NCBI GenBank assembly: GCA_016748015.1
Contig: JAAOMT010000602.1
Coordinates: 943,696-1,007,695 of the forward strand
Reading direction: 5' to 3'
DNA length: 64,000 nt
Source: Geosiphon pyriformis uo1
Taxonomy: Eukaryota; Fungi; Glomeromycota
The first letter of the stretch is position 1; every line of letters starts with the position of its first letter. The notes beneath the pieces were generated by a model. It had not been told where the DNA came from. It saw nothing but the letters and a program-made list of their open reading frames with translations, and searched no databases. Shown piece by piece: positions 55,001 to 63,146 of the stretch. The translations under genes and the position numbers were made by a program.

Positions 55001-57478
55001 ATGCTATTATATAGACCTATTTTATTGATTGTGTATTTGCTAAAATATTATTGTTAACAAATAAGTTTACAATTGCTAAGAATTTTAGTGGCTTGAATTT
55101 TATGTAGAAGATAATAAAAAAAGTAATGACTAACTCTGTAGATTCAATTTTTTCTAAACATTTGTTTAATATCTTTGACTGTTTAAGAAACAAACAGTCT
55201 TCTAAGTTTTACAGGCTTGAATTGTTAATTGTTAAGATACTTAAAGTTTAAGTTCAAAGAATAGCTTAGAATTTGCTTGTTTGATTAAGGTTTGGTCAAA
55301 TTTTAATATTACAGAGGCTTCTAAAATCAACAGCTTGCTTGGTAGTAGTATTAATTTTGTAAATATCATTAAACATTTGTTAATGGTCAAAAAAAGTTAT
55401 TATAAGTCCAAGTATAGAAAATTAAATCTGGCCAAAAGTGCTTTTGTTAAAAAAACAATCAACAAATGTATAAATAATTTTAGTTCAGATAAAAAAAGTA
55501 TAATTAAGAGTATTCTGGATTGGCTATTTCACAAAATTGTTTTTAATTATTTGGTTGTTGAAAAAGAGTTGATTTTAAAGCCAACCAATGTAAAACTCAA
55601 AGTTAACTTAATTATAGTAGATTAGATAAGAAAATAAAAAATATCTATGACTATACCAAATTTATGGTTTTACTAGTATGCACTATTGAGCTATATAGAA
55701 AAAAACACCTTTTTAGATATAATAGATGAAATTAAATTGATTGATTTGGTCTTAGTTATTAAGAATTTACTTGATAGCAAAGCTATTAAACTCTTAGGTA
55801 TATTAAATAAACTTTGAAAGCATTGAGATAATATGATTTTGGATTGTTTTTTGGCTTTGTTAAATGCTTATTTGTTACATGATAATGTTTTAACTTCCTG
55901 GAAGAGTGCTTAGGTGTCAATGATTCTCAAGCCCTATGATTGAAATAATAACTTTATAAACACATATCCTATTGTTTTGATTAAAATAACTAGAAAAATT
56001 TTGTCAAAGCTTTTATCAGACCACATATTTTTAGCTTGTAGTAAGTTTAATGTTCTTTGAAATAACAACTTTTCAGTCTTAAAAAGTACTTTAACCTAAT
56101 AATCTGTATTTGTTATTAGTTCTATAATAGAAAATGTCTTAAAAAAAAGGAAAAAACTCTAGTTATTTTTACAGAATATGCATAAAGCTTATGATTTAGT
56201 AAAGTGGTATCATCTGGAAGCTAGTTTAAAGCATATTAGAATATGTAACAAATTCATTAAGTTCTTTGGAAATATTTATTTGAACAGAACCAACAGGGTA
56301 ATAATTAATTTTGGTCTCTTAAATAGTTATAAAATGCTAGATGGATTTGATCAAGGTGAAGTTTTTTCACTACTTTTTTAGAAAATTTTTTATGACTTTT
56401 TTTTATGTGAGATCAAAAGACATAAATATTTGTGTAAATATAAAGTTGATTTGAAATTCATTATAAAATCTGGTAAAATATAATTTTAGGCTGAGATAAC
56501 TATTTTTTTTGCTGTTGGGGCATTTATGAATAATACAATTTGAATAAACAGTAGTCAAGCTACTACTTAGTACATTTTAAACATAACCAGTGAATTTTTT
56601 GCACTTAATAATATTTCTATAAACACCAAGAAGACTGTTGTTATTCTTATTAATCAAAAAATCAGAAATGTTTCCTTGTTTATTAATGGCTCATTAATTG
56701 CAGTGGCTAAAAAAAGTGAATTTTATTAGTACTTGAATATATTTTTGTCAACAGAAGAACTGTTTAAGCTTAGTTTGGCTAAGGCATATTTAAATATATA
56801 GTTTTTTTCAAACATGGTTTTGTGCAAAGTGATTTCTGATAAACAATTTTGTTTTTTGGTTTTCTTGGTTTTACAATTCATTATTGGCTACAAAATATAA
56901 TTTAATTTTATTCTAGAAAGCACTTGTTCTAAATAAGACATTATAATTAAGAAAGATCTAAAAATCAAGTTACCTATAGCTACATTGTTGTATTTTTTTT
57001 TTATGGTATTAAGACTTTTAGCCAAATGCAGACTGAGTGTAAATTGTTTTCTGTTATGAGTTTTGTGAATGCTCCTGGTATTCTGAAACAGCTTTTTGTT
57101 TACAGATGTTTAGATTTGCAAGTTTCTAGTTAGTTATTATAGTGCAAACTATTTATAGTCATCAAACAATTTATATAATTTTAAATTATATCTAGTCTTC
57201 CAATTTTAATAATATTAAAAAACTAAACTGTAAATATAATAGATTAAGTTCTTTTCTTTTACATTTATGATTTACTTTTTTGAATTATATTATATTTTAT
57301 AAAGTTATTAAAATTTAAAATTAGCCACTTTTATTATTAATCTTTAATTTTCAAATGCCAATCAATTAGATTTTAGCCAATCAGCAATCATTAAAATTAC
57401 ATTACCACATGATAAATCATCAAAGTATTATTATTTTTAGAAAAGCTTTCAATTAATATTAATTTAATCTTTAGATAG

Positions 57479-60375
57479 TTACTTTTTTATAAAAATATAA
57501 TATCTCTTGGCCTGTATGTTTTCTACTAGTAACACAGCACTATTAATCATGAATATTCTATTTATATTATTACTATATTTGGTTGTTATTATTGAGACAG
57601 AAATCCAGATATTAATATTGTTCACATTAGGTGTTAAAGAAATTGTAAAAGTATTATGAACGATTGTCGAAAAATTTGAAAATGTTATTTATGTTCTATT
57701 TGTAATTTTGTATTGATAAATATTGAGAACAACTGGCTTTGGTACTGGAAGCAACAGATTTCAGGCAAAAATTGGAATGACTGTAACATTGTTACAGGTG
57801 ATTATTTGGGGTCTTAAAGCAAATAACAAACCCATAACTTGGTGTTTAATTGCTATAAGAATGTTGATTTCTGAAAGTTGTTTGTATCTAAAGGTTTTTG
57901 TGATTTGAAGATTTGAGTTGAGTTCTTTGTATAATAAACAGAGATTCACTATGATTGGTGTTGGTTGATTTCTCAAGTTGTTTTTCCCAATTTCTGTCTT
58001 CAGCATAGTGACTGGTTTAATCTGGCAGTTATGTCTTTTTGATAAGCTATCCATTAATATATATATAATTCTACTCTTATTTCTGAGTTTTTTACTAGAC
58101 TATCTATGACGTCAATAACTTAGCACTTTAATTCTTTTAATCAATTAGTACACAACAACAAAAAATAAAAATAAAGAAAAGAAAATAAAAGAAATAAAGA
58201 AAAGATAAAAAAAATAAGCCAATGTGATTGCAAGTTAGTATTTTGTCAATAGCTATGATCAAGAACTATTGTTTCAGTGTGGTTAAATATCAATTATTAT
58301 TAACATAAAGTGTTGATAGTGGAGAGTAGATTGAGATAGTAAATAATTATTTATTGATATTTGTGGTGTGAAAGATTGCTTAAATTAAATCTAAACTAAG
58401 AGATCTGTCTTTTTTTCTTCTAATACTACCACTATATATACATAATTGAGATTCCTCAATTCCTCAATTTTTTACACCAGGAATTCTGGAATTCTTAGAA
58501 TCCTGCAATTTCTTTTGAAAAGAATCCTAAAATTCTGGAATCTTGCAATTCCTTATATAAAAATCCTGAAATTTCACATTTACTATGGCTATTTCTAATT
58601 GGCTAATTTATATGCTAATATACTTTCTATATTCTATGAATAACAATGTGATTGGCTGTCAGCCCAAGAGTAATACTGTAAATGAAATGTTTGGTATTAA
58701 GAAACATTACAAAAGATTAATTACTTACTTCAACTCCTATACCTTAAAGTAAAGGCGTGGTTCAAAATTTATGAAAAAAATTAATGCAATTAATTTTTTA
58801 ATAAATGGACTCTGCGGTAAATTATAGATGGCTTATCTTTTTTTGCAGCATCATATACACAACATATGTTCTTTAATAATTGATGTTTTAACCACTTTTT
58901 TTTTGTAAAATTTTAGGAATAAATTGTGTTTTGTCTGATAAGAGAAATAATTAAAAGCTTAAAAATATAAAGCATAAGAGTAGTATTCATGATTAAAAAT
59001 TAACTTGATTAGGTTTGAAAAAAAAAGAATCTGCAAATTATTTTTGCAATTTATAAGAGATAAGAAACAGTAAGCAACTTTAAAAATTTTGACCAATATT
59101 ATTTTTATTATAATGTGGATACTTACTTTGAATTTACAAATAACTTTTCAATAACTATAATATTGTGTTTTAAAGAATTACTTGGATCTAAGAAATATAT
59201 GAAATCTCTTGTAATAAAGATTTCTGGTTAAATTTAATATTTGAATAATAAATTATATTAAAGAAAAATATAATAACTAAAATACCTATCATGTATTCGA
59301 TTAAATCATGATCTAGTTTTAAAATTGGTTTCTTAGACTGTAAAAGAAATTTCAATTGCTGAATATTTCAACAATTTATTAGAATGTAATATATAATAGC
59401 TTATTACAGTAATCAAAAAATTTATATTAGTTGGTGTTAATTTAGAGGAATTAGGTTAGAATTGAAAGATCTTTGGCTTTATCTTAATTGAGAGAACTGA
59501 AGTTATCTTAAAGCCCATAATCTTAAATAGCTCTTTTTTGTTAGTGTTGTACATTTTCTAACAAGTTTGTTTTAATGCAAAAAATATATAAAATGTATTA
59601 GTTCAAGTAAATAAAACCCAGATTTTTTTGTGAAGGCCTAATAAACTTCTTAATTGTAAGAATTTAGCATCTTTGAAAATATGTAAATCATTATTAAAAT
59701 ACATGGCATTTTCAAAATCAATTACAAGTTCTGATTAAATTTATAAATGGATAATATTTTTTTCGAATTTTCTATTGATGTAATATAGAAAACATATATT
59801 AAGTATTAAGTAACCAATGAAAAAGAAGTGCATAGTATCAATCTTGATCATGTTTAAGAATCTTGGCTTTTTAATCACATCATAATATTCTGAATATTTT
59901 TTTTTGGATGGTAAATCCATAAATAATTCAGCATATTGTTGATCACTGAATATGAAAATTAGAGGTTACAACTAGGCTGTAATACTAAAATTGAAATTTA
60001 TCTCAAATATTCTTACTTACTATCTTTTTAATTAACAATTATTTGCAATAAATTTTTTATTAGCTTTGAGAAATTGGCTTTAATTTGAAAATCGGGTTTT
60101 TTTTGAGTTGGTTGTTTAATTGTTAATATTAGACTTTTTTGCCCAAATTCCTTGTTATAAGTTGAAGAGATTTTTGTGGTAACTATTTTTATTGATGTTA
60201 CTTGAATTTTCGGCTCAGATGATCTCTTTAATCCCAATAAAAAATTTTTTTTGATGAATGCCAAAGGAGCTTTTTTTGATTGCTTCTTATTCAAAACTAC
60301 AAAACAGAAATTAAAGTTTAAATTGAAACAAAAAAAATTTAAAGAATAAATATATACCTAAGTTAAAAACACTAT
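57479..60375 (-). pseudogene. Transposon cargo gene: bromodomain + BAH (RSC1/2-polybromo-like) chromatin reader, intron-containing, interrupted by a solo LTR
   Basis: Spliced translation KDSN|DQQYAELFMDLPSKKKYSEYYDVIKKP...ENAMYFNNDLHIFKDAKFLQ (bromodomain, ~60060-59654); RDFIYFLDPSNSLKHNIIVIEKLF, FADSFFFKPNQ|TKHNLFLKFYKKKVVKT (BAH, 59223-58880). Confidence 0.82.
57790..58645 (-). repeat. Solo LTR, family A (856 bp), 4-bp TSD
   Basis: TGTTA...TAACA termini, homologous to 387-1225 and 19766-20591. Flanks ACAT and ATGT are both one transition from ACGT. Confidence 0.92.
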
Positions 60376-60480
60376 TTTTATTATAATACAATTTTGTTGT
60401 ATAATATTATATGGTTTAAATTCTTTAATTCTGTCTAAGCACCAATTACATACTAAATTAATATCACATCACATAAAAAA

Positions 60481-62610
60481 ATACCACTTTATTTTAAAGA
60501 AAAAAGAAAAGCTAAAGATTAAGTTAGAAATGCAAAAAGATCATATAAAAAAACACATCATATTACTTTAATAAATGATCATAATATTAAAGTAAATAAA
60601 TTTAACAGATTGAATGTTAATGATAAAGAGTGGGATAATAATAATAACAGTGAATGAGATAATACAGAAGATATGAAAACTGCGATTAAAATAAATACAA
60701 AATTAAAAAAACTCAGTTTAGTATGGAAAAATGACAATCATCTAAAAAAAAAGTGAGGCTTTTACATAACAAAAGATACCAAAGTCAATTTATTACAATA
60801 AATATAGACCAAATGATTTATTCATCAAAGCAGCAACCAAAACTAAAAAAATTACCACTTTCTTTAATATTAGTGATGCTTAAACTACAGATTTACAATG
60901 TTCCAAATCTAATAAATTTTTAAACAATTCAGAAAGTGAGGTTAATTTGTATGCTAATCAAATAAAAAAAGAACAAAAGTTAAAAAAATATTTAGAAAAA
61001 CAACATACTCAGTTAAATGTCTTTAAATATAATCAAAAAAGAGCTATTTTTGAATATCTTACCTTATTAAATAATAATAATAGACATGGAAAAATTAATA
61101 CCAGTTTGAAAATTATTCAGAAGATTTTTATTGATGGTAGTATATAGAAAACACAAAAAATTCGATATCTTGCAAAATATTGGTTGCTTAATAATAAATT
61201 TTCAACATCAAAACATGAAAAACACCAAAAAATAATTAGAATAATTGATGATGAAGACATTGTGGAAAGATGTCATATTTGGATTAGAAACCAAAAACTT
61301 CAATGCCATTCCAGCCATATTTAAAAAATTCATTAAGCATAAATTGTTTCCTAATATTAGAATAATAAAAAAAAAACTATTAGTCTTATGATTGCAATAA
61401 GATAGCTCAAAATTCTTGGTTATTCATTCCAATAATATTATTAAGGCTTATATTATAATAGACATAAAAGAAATAATGTCTTGTAATCTCGAAAAAAAAT
61501 TTTAGAAAAAATATTTGAGCATAAAAAATATATGTCAAAATATGAAAGTAAATTTATGGATTGAATACATTCTAACTTACTTAATGGAGAGAAAAAAAGA
61601 GTTCTTGTAGTCCATGATAAATGTATTTTTTATTTAAATAATGACAAGCATGACATATAGACTGAACATAAAAATTTTTACTAAGAAAAAAAGAAAAAGG
61701 AAGATCAATTATAATTAGTAAATTTCTAACTGAAATTAATGGATATTTACATTTACAACAAAATGATATAGAAAACTATTCTAATATACTGGAAAAGGCA
61801 CAATGCTATTTGTAATTTAATATAAATCAAAATGGTTATTAGACAGCAGACCATCTTCTTAAACAAATTAAATGTAAAGCAATTCCAATTTTTAAGAAAT
61901 TATATTTGAACTGTACAGTTATATTTGCTTTTGATAATAGCTCTAATCATACAGCATTTAGTAAAGATGTTTTAATTGTAAGCAAAATGAATTTAAGTCC
62001 AGATAAAAGCAATCATTGATGCAAGATACTTCTTTTGGATTAGATAATCAATTACAATTGATGATCTTTCCAGAAACATATTCAAATAAAAAACTTTAAA
62101 GATTGCCTAAAAGAATTAAACAAGTATTAATAGAATAAAGAAAATGGCCATCAAAAAGATTAGTATTAGAATGCCAAAAATGCAAAGAAAAAATCAAAGA
62201 TTTTTCAAGAATTTCTTGTTGTGCATATCAAGTAATATCTTTGGAATTTGATTTTCTTGCTTAAAAAAATGCAATTAAAGAATTAATTGAAAGTATAAGA
62301 CATAAGTGCATTTTTTTTCCAAAATTTCATTGTGAATTAAATTTTATTGAAAGATATTAGAGAGCTGCTAAAAGATATACACATAACAAATGTAATTATT
62401 TATGGAAAAAATTACAAAAAACAGTACTTGAAAGTCTTGAATCAATATCTTTAATAACTATTAAATGATTTTCAAGAAAATGTTGGTGTTATATGAATTT
62501 TTATAGAAAAAGTCTTAATAGAAAATTAGTAAAATATGCTATAAAAAAGTATAAATCTTATAAAAAAATTCCAGATTATATTCTTAAAAAATTAGACAAA
62601 TTAAATAATA
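60481..62610 (+). pseudogene. DDE transposase (IS630/Tc1-like)
   Basis: IIDDEDI, VLVVHDKCIFY (D1, ~61616), IFAFDNSSNH (D2, 61933), FFPKFHCELNFIERY (E, 62349). Many C>T-type stops. Confidence 0.92.
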
Positions 62611-63146
62611 TTCAAACTTTGTAATACTGTATTTGGTTTTATATTATATAAAATTTAATAAAATTTTATTTTTTATTATAAATAATATATTAAAAACACA
62701 TGTATATTAACCAATAAAATTTAATTATATAAATAAAAACATGTAAAAATCATCATTTAAAATTTTGGACTAATCTATATTTTTGATAATTATAAATAGT
62801 TTGCACTATAGTACATATATTGTGTTATTTTATTAAATTGTGTATCAGTTCTAAGAATAATTTTTTAGTTGGAATTGTGAAAATTTTTTTATTTTGTGAC
62901 TTGTTTTTTTTTGCAGCTCTGCTAAGTGTTTTTTATTTTTTTAATGGAATCCCAATGTCTGAGATTCCTGGATGCAATGGTTTCTTTGAAATGGCTTATT
63001 TTCTAAAATGCTATAGTATTGGTTTTGTGGAACAACTGTTAAACAAGAGTGGTAAATGTTTTAAATACTGAAAATATCTAGATTCACAAGGTTTTGTCTC
63101 TGCTTAATTTAGCTTGGCTGTCTGTTTTTTAAGTAACAAGCTATCT

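Follow-up and report, generated by a model that had tools for sequence, protein, structure and literature searches.

A frame-broken, intron-bearing remodeller gene fragment as probable passenger of a TA-duplicating DNA transposon in Geosiphon pyriformis

Does a DNA transposon of the glomeromycete Geosiphon pyriformis encode a chromatin reader of its own? The question is raised by positions 57140-62808 of the window, that is, of the whole 64,000-nucleotide stretch analysed here (assembly GCA_016748015.1, contig JAAOMT010000602.1, positions 943,696 to 1,007,695 of the forward strand). A first-pass annotation, made from the letters of the DNA, had placed there a Tc1/IS630-type element with a DDE transposase and, divergent from it, a gene for a compact bromodomain-BAH protein that was imagined to work as an anti-silencing factor or a target guide. 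In sum, our data point toward a different answer, which we consider probable: the second gene is a pseudogene that arose by transduplication and travels as a passenger in an autonomous, Tc1/IS630-like element. The element was later subjected to C-to-T hypermutation, and its founder was already frame-broken and without a working chromatin reader.

The element measures 5.7 kb, lies in AT-rich surroundings (GC content 20-25%) and has inverted ends of about 27 nt with a TA on both flanks; the arms at 57135-57166 and 62782-62813 are 91% complementary. In about 25 copies, i.e., in every copy with readable ends, an invariant TA abuts both ends and the next flanking base is variable, and therefore, the limits of the element are 57140-62808, with the TA target-site duplication at 57138-57139 on the left and 62809-62810 on the right. 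The left terminal inverted repeat (57140-57166, plus strand), placed by arm pairing and by the ends of the copies, starts in its unmutated form with TGGTGCAAACC, and its right counterpart occupies 62782-62808 on the minus strand. Two genes stand head to head between these ends, with presumed start codons about 105 bp apart: a decayed DDE transposase on the plus strand (60481-62624) and, on the minus strand, a multi-exon gene, hereafter the cargo, which lies between the left end and the transposase promoter. The copies thus confirm the ends and the TA of the DDE transposon with a divergent second gene that had first been described.

The genome from which the window derives (128 Mb in 792 contigs) was searched at the DNA level. 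The window element gave 105 matches, from which 30 loci with 84-89% identity were retrieved; seeds taken from unmutated pieces found the transposase at 40 places and the cargo at 41, and the last cargo exon had 85 matches. The family comprises at least 40 copies, and the cargo, far from being a peculiarity of the window copy, is present at the same place and in the same orientation in every copy examined. Canonical copies are about 4.8 kb long; one subfamily has an internal deletion of 1.4 kb, and another has a common insertion. The window copy carries an unrelated nested repeat of about 860 bp (57790-58646) that had escaped the first-pass annotation and splits its last cargo exon; canonical copies are without this repeat, and its flanks are contiguous there. 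One copy, L039 on contig C54, is unmutated and truncated by the contig end. It could be argued that there is no cargo at all and that the transposon was nested by chance with a host-gene remnant, or that the arrangement is an assembly artefact. This is refuted by the copy survey, because dozens of contigs show the same layout, enclosed each time by the same TA-flanked ends, and we assign it practically no probability.

The host homologue of the cargo is G9A89_020961 (P0038, 1278 amino acids; contig C728, locus L031), an RSC1/2/4- or polybromo-like protein with the domain order bromodomain, ankyrin repeats, bromodomain, BAH, long linker, and RSC4 immunoglobulin-like (Ig-like) domain. Orthologues of the same architecture are present in Ambispora, Paraglomus, Actinomortierella, Calcarisporiella, Bifiguratus, and Basidiobolus. 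The cargo is collinear, exon by exon, with the 3′ part of G9A89_020961 and matches its second bromodomain, linker, BAH N-half, and Ig-like last exon with 55-85% amino acid identity per exon; it differs by the absence of the first bromodomain, the ankyrin repeats, the BAH C-half, and the long linker, and by its broken frame. The DNA of the two genes is about 70% identical and contains a single identical run of 23 nt. GT/AG sites stand at the same positions in both genes, although the introns themselves cannot be aligned. Since the intron positions and splice signals of the host gene are kept, the cargo was captured as genomic DNA, as had been supposed from its introns.

All cargo coordinates are on the minus strand. 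Exon A (60019-60375) contains the presumed start codon, an unrelated leader, and the start of bromodomain helix Z, and is followed by exon B (59843-59945) with part of the ZA loop and exon C (59654-59772) with helices A-C. Exons D and E, including the intron between them (59285-59557), make up the linker between bromodomain and BAH, and exons F and G, again with their intron (59005-59206), the N-half of BAH. Exon H (58837-58930) is a BAH remnant that ends at the junction of an out-of-frame deletion of about 0.95 kb. The last exon (exon I) was mapped from the unmutated copy L039 and is split in the window by the nested repeat into a 5′ part with the Ig-like domain (58648-58760) and a 3′ part with the RSC4 Ig-like remnant (57481-57787), which is homologous to the host exon L031:1050-1502 and ends at YYIFIKK and a stop.

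The domain calls rest on whole-genome profile scans and on the unmutated copies, with the cargo exons searched singly; Pfam matches were only weak when stop-free pieces were taken from the window copy or from other mutated copies. In the genome scan with PF00439 (bromodomain), exon B was matched in about 35 transposon copies with 16-24 bits, always at positions 9-43 of the hidden Markov model (HMM), and exon B of the unmutated copy reached 22.1 bits (cut-off 21.7, HMM 10-36). The genome scan for BAH yielded no significant match in mutated copies. Gene model P0037 matched PF01426 (BAH) over exons F and G with 30.1 bits (cut-off 30.8) and only at HMM 2-58 of 121; a full BAH domain is absent from the cargo, as its C-half lies in the 0.95 kb that is missing from the transposon. 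PF22994 (RSC4 Ig-like, cut-off 24.2) gave 20.6 bits for the last exon of the transposon, 27.7 bits for the host exon, and 18.5 bits for P0037, and the last exons of transposon and host are 65-72% identical. The derivation of bromodomain, BAH N-half, and beta-rich tail from an RSC/polybromo-type gene, as first annotated, is supported by the host homologue, and the tail can now be named as RSC4 Ig-like.

Can these parts be read as one protein? Frames were read by joining the exons defined by transcript contigs (see below) in a script. Compared to the host gene, exon C has two separate deletions of 1 nt, so that the homologous reading runs through three frames, and both deletions are found in all of the 28 aligned copies and in the unmutated L039. 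Indeed, the host counterpart of exon C is matched by the bromodomain profile with 30.4 bits, whereas exon C of the transposon is not matched in any frame. The frame that enters from exons A and B meets a stop 18 codons into exon C, and no complete four-helix bromodomain is readable in one frame of the cargo. The acetyl-lysine-binding Asn (in the YFN motif), which had been reported as kept, is present as a residue but out of frame with the upstream helices. The third lesion is in the large host exon for the BAH C-half and the linker, of which about 0.95 kb is lost in the cargo together with 2 nt at the junction, out of frame; the junction is identical in all copies, and the frame of the bromodomain C-helix and the BAH N-half ends there with a stop. 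The Ig-like exon, an open frame of 142 codons in unmutated copies, is in the third frame of the spliced RNA. Hence, no single frame of the spliced RNA can span bromodomain, BAH, and Ig-like tail, and since every copy, including the unmutated ones, has all three lesions, the founder of all copies was already frame-broken. A working reader, as the first-pass annotation had suggested, is not supported, given two frameshifts and an out-of-frame BAH deletion in the founder.

Two further candidates in this context were rejected. An additional frameshift, seen where a BAH exon has a run of T, turned out to be a consensus artefact, as L039 reads through in one frame. For a rescue of exon C by splicing, the sole in-frame option would rely on a weak donor at the cost of about 16 residues (helix A plus half of helix B), and it was rejected because the contigs use the host-like sites.

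How far can reading frames be trusted in a family of heavily mutated copies? A plain majority consensus was still AT-mutated and had many stops; a consensus corrected for C>T/G>A from the family copies restored the frames. Naturally occurring copies, namely L039, L037, and three short derivatives of 1.27 kb, validate the corrected consensus, to which they are 97-99% identical. Of 14,250 differences from it, 13,525 (95%) are G>A or C>T. Per copy, 18-45% of the C/G sites are changed; in the window copy, it is 32%. The window copy is dead, as had been stated at the outset. All dinucleotides are affected, with CpG at the top (58% of sites) and CpC (39%), CpA (33%), and CpT (29%) following. Repeat-induced point mutation (RIP) of Neurospora has a CpA bias and in this respect differs from the C-to-T spectrum of Geosiphon, which extends to every context and is highest at CpG.

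The derivatives (L035:5154-6413, L036:1543-2802, and L038:1391-2651 on contigs C357, C657, and C666) are non-autonomous deletion products in which the two ends, the BAH exons, and one half of the Ig-like exon are left. These derivatives are essentially without C-to-T hypermutation and lie in gene-rich DNA, whereas the hypermutated full-length copies lie in AT-rich DNA; nearly unmutated short and mutated full-length members of one family therefore constitute matched material on how this genome chooses its targets of hypermutation. The least-mutated full-length copy, L037:5273-7698 (contig C689), is the one most likely to be intact, but its sequence is N precisely across the cargo and the initial third of the transposase.

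The transcript evidence comes from one study. Contigs of the public run X1 resemble L039 at 95-100% and leave out eight stretches (70-145 nt each), which end in CT..AC on the plus strand, corresponding to GT..AG on the cargo strand, and neither the introns nor the terminal 400 nt have any cover. The library type of X1 is not on record, but a DNA library would have covered introns and ends, given dozens of copies, and therefore, the contigs are read as derived from complementary DNA. Thus, the cargo appears to be transcribed and spliced, and a check of the splice junctions, as the first-pass annotation had proposed, came out in favor of the eight GT..AG introns. A second run, X2, contains a 386-nt piece with 97% identity that extends into an intron. 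Model P0037 (290 amino acids, partial; on the same contig as the joined exons) joins BAH to the Ig-like exon via an acceptor that the contigs do not use, and was set aside as a gene structure.

Transcription and splicing of the cargo strand would be in line with a broken cargo that still acts, be it as RNA that overlaps the 5′ end of the transposase in antisense and feeds silencing, as a regulator of the host gene, or by way of an Ig-like peptide that disturbs remodeller assembly. Furthermore, a contig of 1155 nt has 751 nt upstream of exon B and, if collinear, may run about 290 nt antisense into the transposase coding region; however, its upstream part could not be read. The open Ig-like frame would suit the peptide, but its position as third frame in the RNA offers no evident route to translation, and 70% identity with a single identical run of 23 nt is too low for efficient RNA interference on the host gene. 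We consider any such activity very doubtful and return to a passenger pseudogene as the preferred explanation.

What kind of element carries the cargo? The transposase of the window copy (about 60481-62624) has many stops and shows the motifs VVHD, FDNSS, and FHCELNFIERY; the corrected reading restores about 720 residues except for two shifts at homopolymer runs. Family fragments and database homologues match PF13358 (DDE_3) with 14-27 bits (cut-off 28.6) and only at HMM positions of about 81-136, around the catalytic E, and some database homologues carry a precomputed PF13358 match. Homologues are a protein of Rhizophagus irregularis (72%), a protein of Scutellospora, and a protein of Scleroderma labelled as Tc1-like transposase. 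A sequence search of PDB with the transposase gave no relevant match, and the ESM Atlas features for a piece of it pointed to unnamed fungal clusters only. The TA duplication, short terminal inverted repeats, multiple copies, a C-terminal motif resembling 'DLNPIE..W' of Tc1, and homologues labelled Tc1-like DDE_3 connect the element to the Tc1/mariner/IS630 group, from which it differs in the length of its transposase, in DDE_3 matches that stay below threshold and are confined to the surroundings of E, and in a spacing of 133 residues between the second D and E, which includes a Cys-rich insert and is unlike classical Tc1. From the TA duplication and the sub-threshold DDE_3 matches, it is reasonable, but not proven, to regard the element as distantly Tc1/IS630-like.

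The relative in Rhizophagus irregularis (L040:6449-8564, BDIQ02000106.1) has 54-72% amino acid identity and 72-78% DNA identity over 2 kb. There was no cargo within 6-8 kb of it, and no clear inverted ends were found. An identity of 72-78% at the DNA level seems high for lineages as distant as Rhizophagus and Geosiphon, and a horizontal transfer of transposons between mycorrhizal fungi may lie behind it.

Several points weigh against a passenger pseudogene. All eight cargo introns are still spliced accurately; the X1 library on which this rests was guessed to be 'probably DNA' by the tool, which leaves an intron-less DNA retrocopy as a possible, and the only, alternative. Comparison of the last exon of the cargo with that of the resident gene gave a synonymous divergence (pS) of 0.77, which is saturated, and a nonsynonymous divergence (pN) of 0.21. 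With six outgroups, the lineage of the cargo received 20 amino acid changes and that of the host gene 13, and the branch length of the cargo (0.31) lies between those of the host genes (0.18 and 0.44). A maximum-likelihood tree of 257 columns unites the cargo with the host genes of Geosiphon and Ambispora in one group (support 64/94), within which the three form a three-way split, with p values of 0.19 and 0.35 in the approximately unbiased (AU) test for the two alternative orders. As judged from these comparisons, the age of the cargo far exceeds what a casual capture from the resident gene in recent times would imply, and its split from the resident gene is about as old as the split of the two families represented by Geosiphon and Ambispora. 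Saturated synonymous sites combined with a host-like protein branch indicate that purifying selection acted on the cargo sequence during most of its past, be it in a host genome or inside the transposon, and that decay is only recent.

On sequence grounds, three histories would fit such a deep but protein-conservative divergence: the late capture of a paralogue that is now lost, a capture that took place in a foreign host, with the transposon then moving horizontally among mycorrhizal fungi, or a long period in which the cargo served the transposon as a selected, formerly functional gene. In the last case, the cargo would have been a working accessory protein for a long time, a bromodomain-BAH-Ig reader that guided or protected the element and was broken shortly before the last burst. 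Not only the deep divergence from the resident gene and the host-like branch length but also the intact splice sites and the constant place and orientation of the cargo in every copy, head to head with the transposase, speak for such a past. However, no intact version was found, the three frame-breaking lesions are in all copies and half of BAH is missing, and a lost paralogue or a capture in a foreign host explains the same pattern of divergence. Furthermore, the relative in Rhizophagus is free of cargo, and protein searches and a metagenome scan for the last exon of the cargo revealed no transposon-type cargo outside G. pyriformis. We therefore regard a long-working accessory protein as unlikely, and its dated form, in which the cargo was selected for most of the time since the host split (about as deep as Geosiphon-Ambispora) and broken just before the last Geosiphon burst, as about equally unlikely. 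If it were true, other Archaeosporales may still harbor intact two-gene elements with a chromatin reader of their own.

In our model of a passenger pseudogene, an autonomous TA-duplicating element of about 4.8 kb would have acquired about 2.2 kb of genomic DNA from a remodeller gene of the RSC/polybromo type. The donor may have been a lost paralogue or an orthologue from another Archaeosporales-like host, rather than the present resident gene in a recent state. Pseudogenisation would have been late, with the three frame breaks preceding the spread of the family, and the fragment would travel as a passenger merely by lying inside the ends. Most of the full-length copies would then have been ruined by C-to-T hypermutation, with the 1.27 kb derivatives nearly spared.

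How does this compare to known captures? Pack-MULE and Pack-CACTA elements of plants are non-autonomous and contain gene fragments with introns that are often transcribed, mostly pseudogenes, and usually recent and near-identical. The Geosiphon element resembles them in that an intron-bearing host gene fragment lies inside transposon ends and a parental-type gene is found elsewhere in the genome. However, the strict definition of Pack elements demands a non-autonomous carrier, whereas the fragment here lies beside the transposase in an autonomous element, and its synonymous sites are saturated relative to the resident gene. VANC proteins of VANDAL elements and chromodomains of chromoviruses are intact translated proteins or domains; only the idea of a transposon-borne chromatin-interacting module is common to them and the cargo, and as the founder had no intact frame, the analogy is not supported. 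The closer fungal precedent is the capture of histone H3 by hAT elements in Dothideomycetes, the copies of which were then hit by RIP (PMC6710886); transduplication in Pyrenophora is also the subject of another paper according to its title (PMC3538342). As in Pseudocercospora fijiensis and Pyrenophora tritici-repentis, a host gene was captured by a complete DNA transposon, and the copies were then ruined by C-to-T changes (PMC6710886). In contrast, the carrier described here is TA-duplicating and DDE_3-like, its host is a glomeromycete and not an ascomycete, and its cargo comprises several exons from the 3′ part of a gene, introns included, was frame-broken before amplification, and is far diverged from the resident gene.

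Fungal captures of this kind have so far come mainly from hAT elements of ascomycetes, and our literature search turned up neither a paper that describes one in Glomeromycotina nor one on bromodomain cargo. The element adds a clear example from Glomeromycotina of a gene captured by a transposon, with an autonomous TA-duplicating DDE carrier and an intron-bearing cargo from a chromatin-remodeller gene, and at the same time, it corrects the attractive idea that the element encodes a working chromatin reader.

Some minor observations concern insertions into and around the family. The repeat of about 860 bp at 57790-58646 recurs in or beside several other family copies, in both orientations, as if it favored a sequence or a compartment. 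Eight copies (L006, L008, L009, L011, L012, L025, L028, and L029) have in common an insertion (about 0.9 kb) that sits precisely where the BAH deletion is joined (query position 1724/1725), which points to a subfamily that was mobile after the insertion or to segmental duplication. Finally, the host gene models P0054, P0055, P0056, and P0040 (e.g., G9A89_001207 by L035:5154-6413) contain stretches that are 80-100% identical to the cargo exons of the 1.27 kb derivatives. A succinate-dehydrogenase iron-sulfur subunit and a methyltransferase are among these models, and the stretches may reflect either exonisation of a derivative or a run-on of the annotation.

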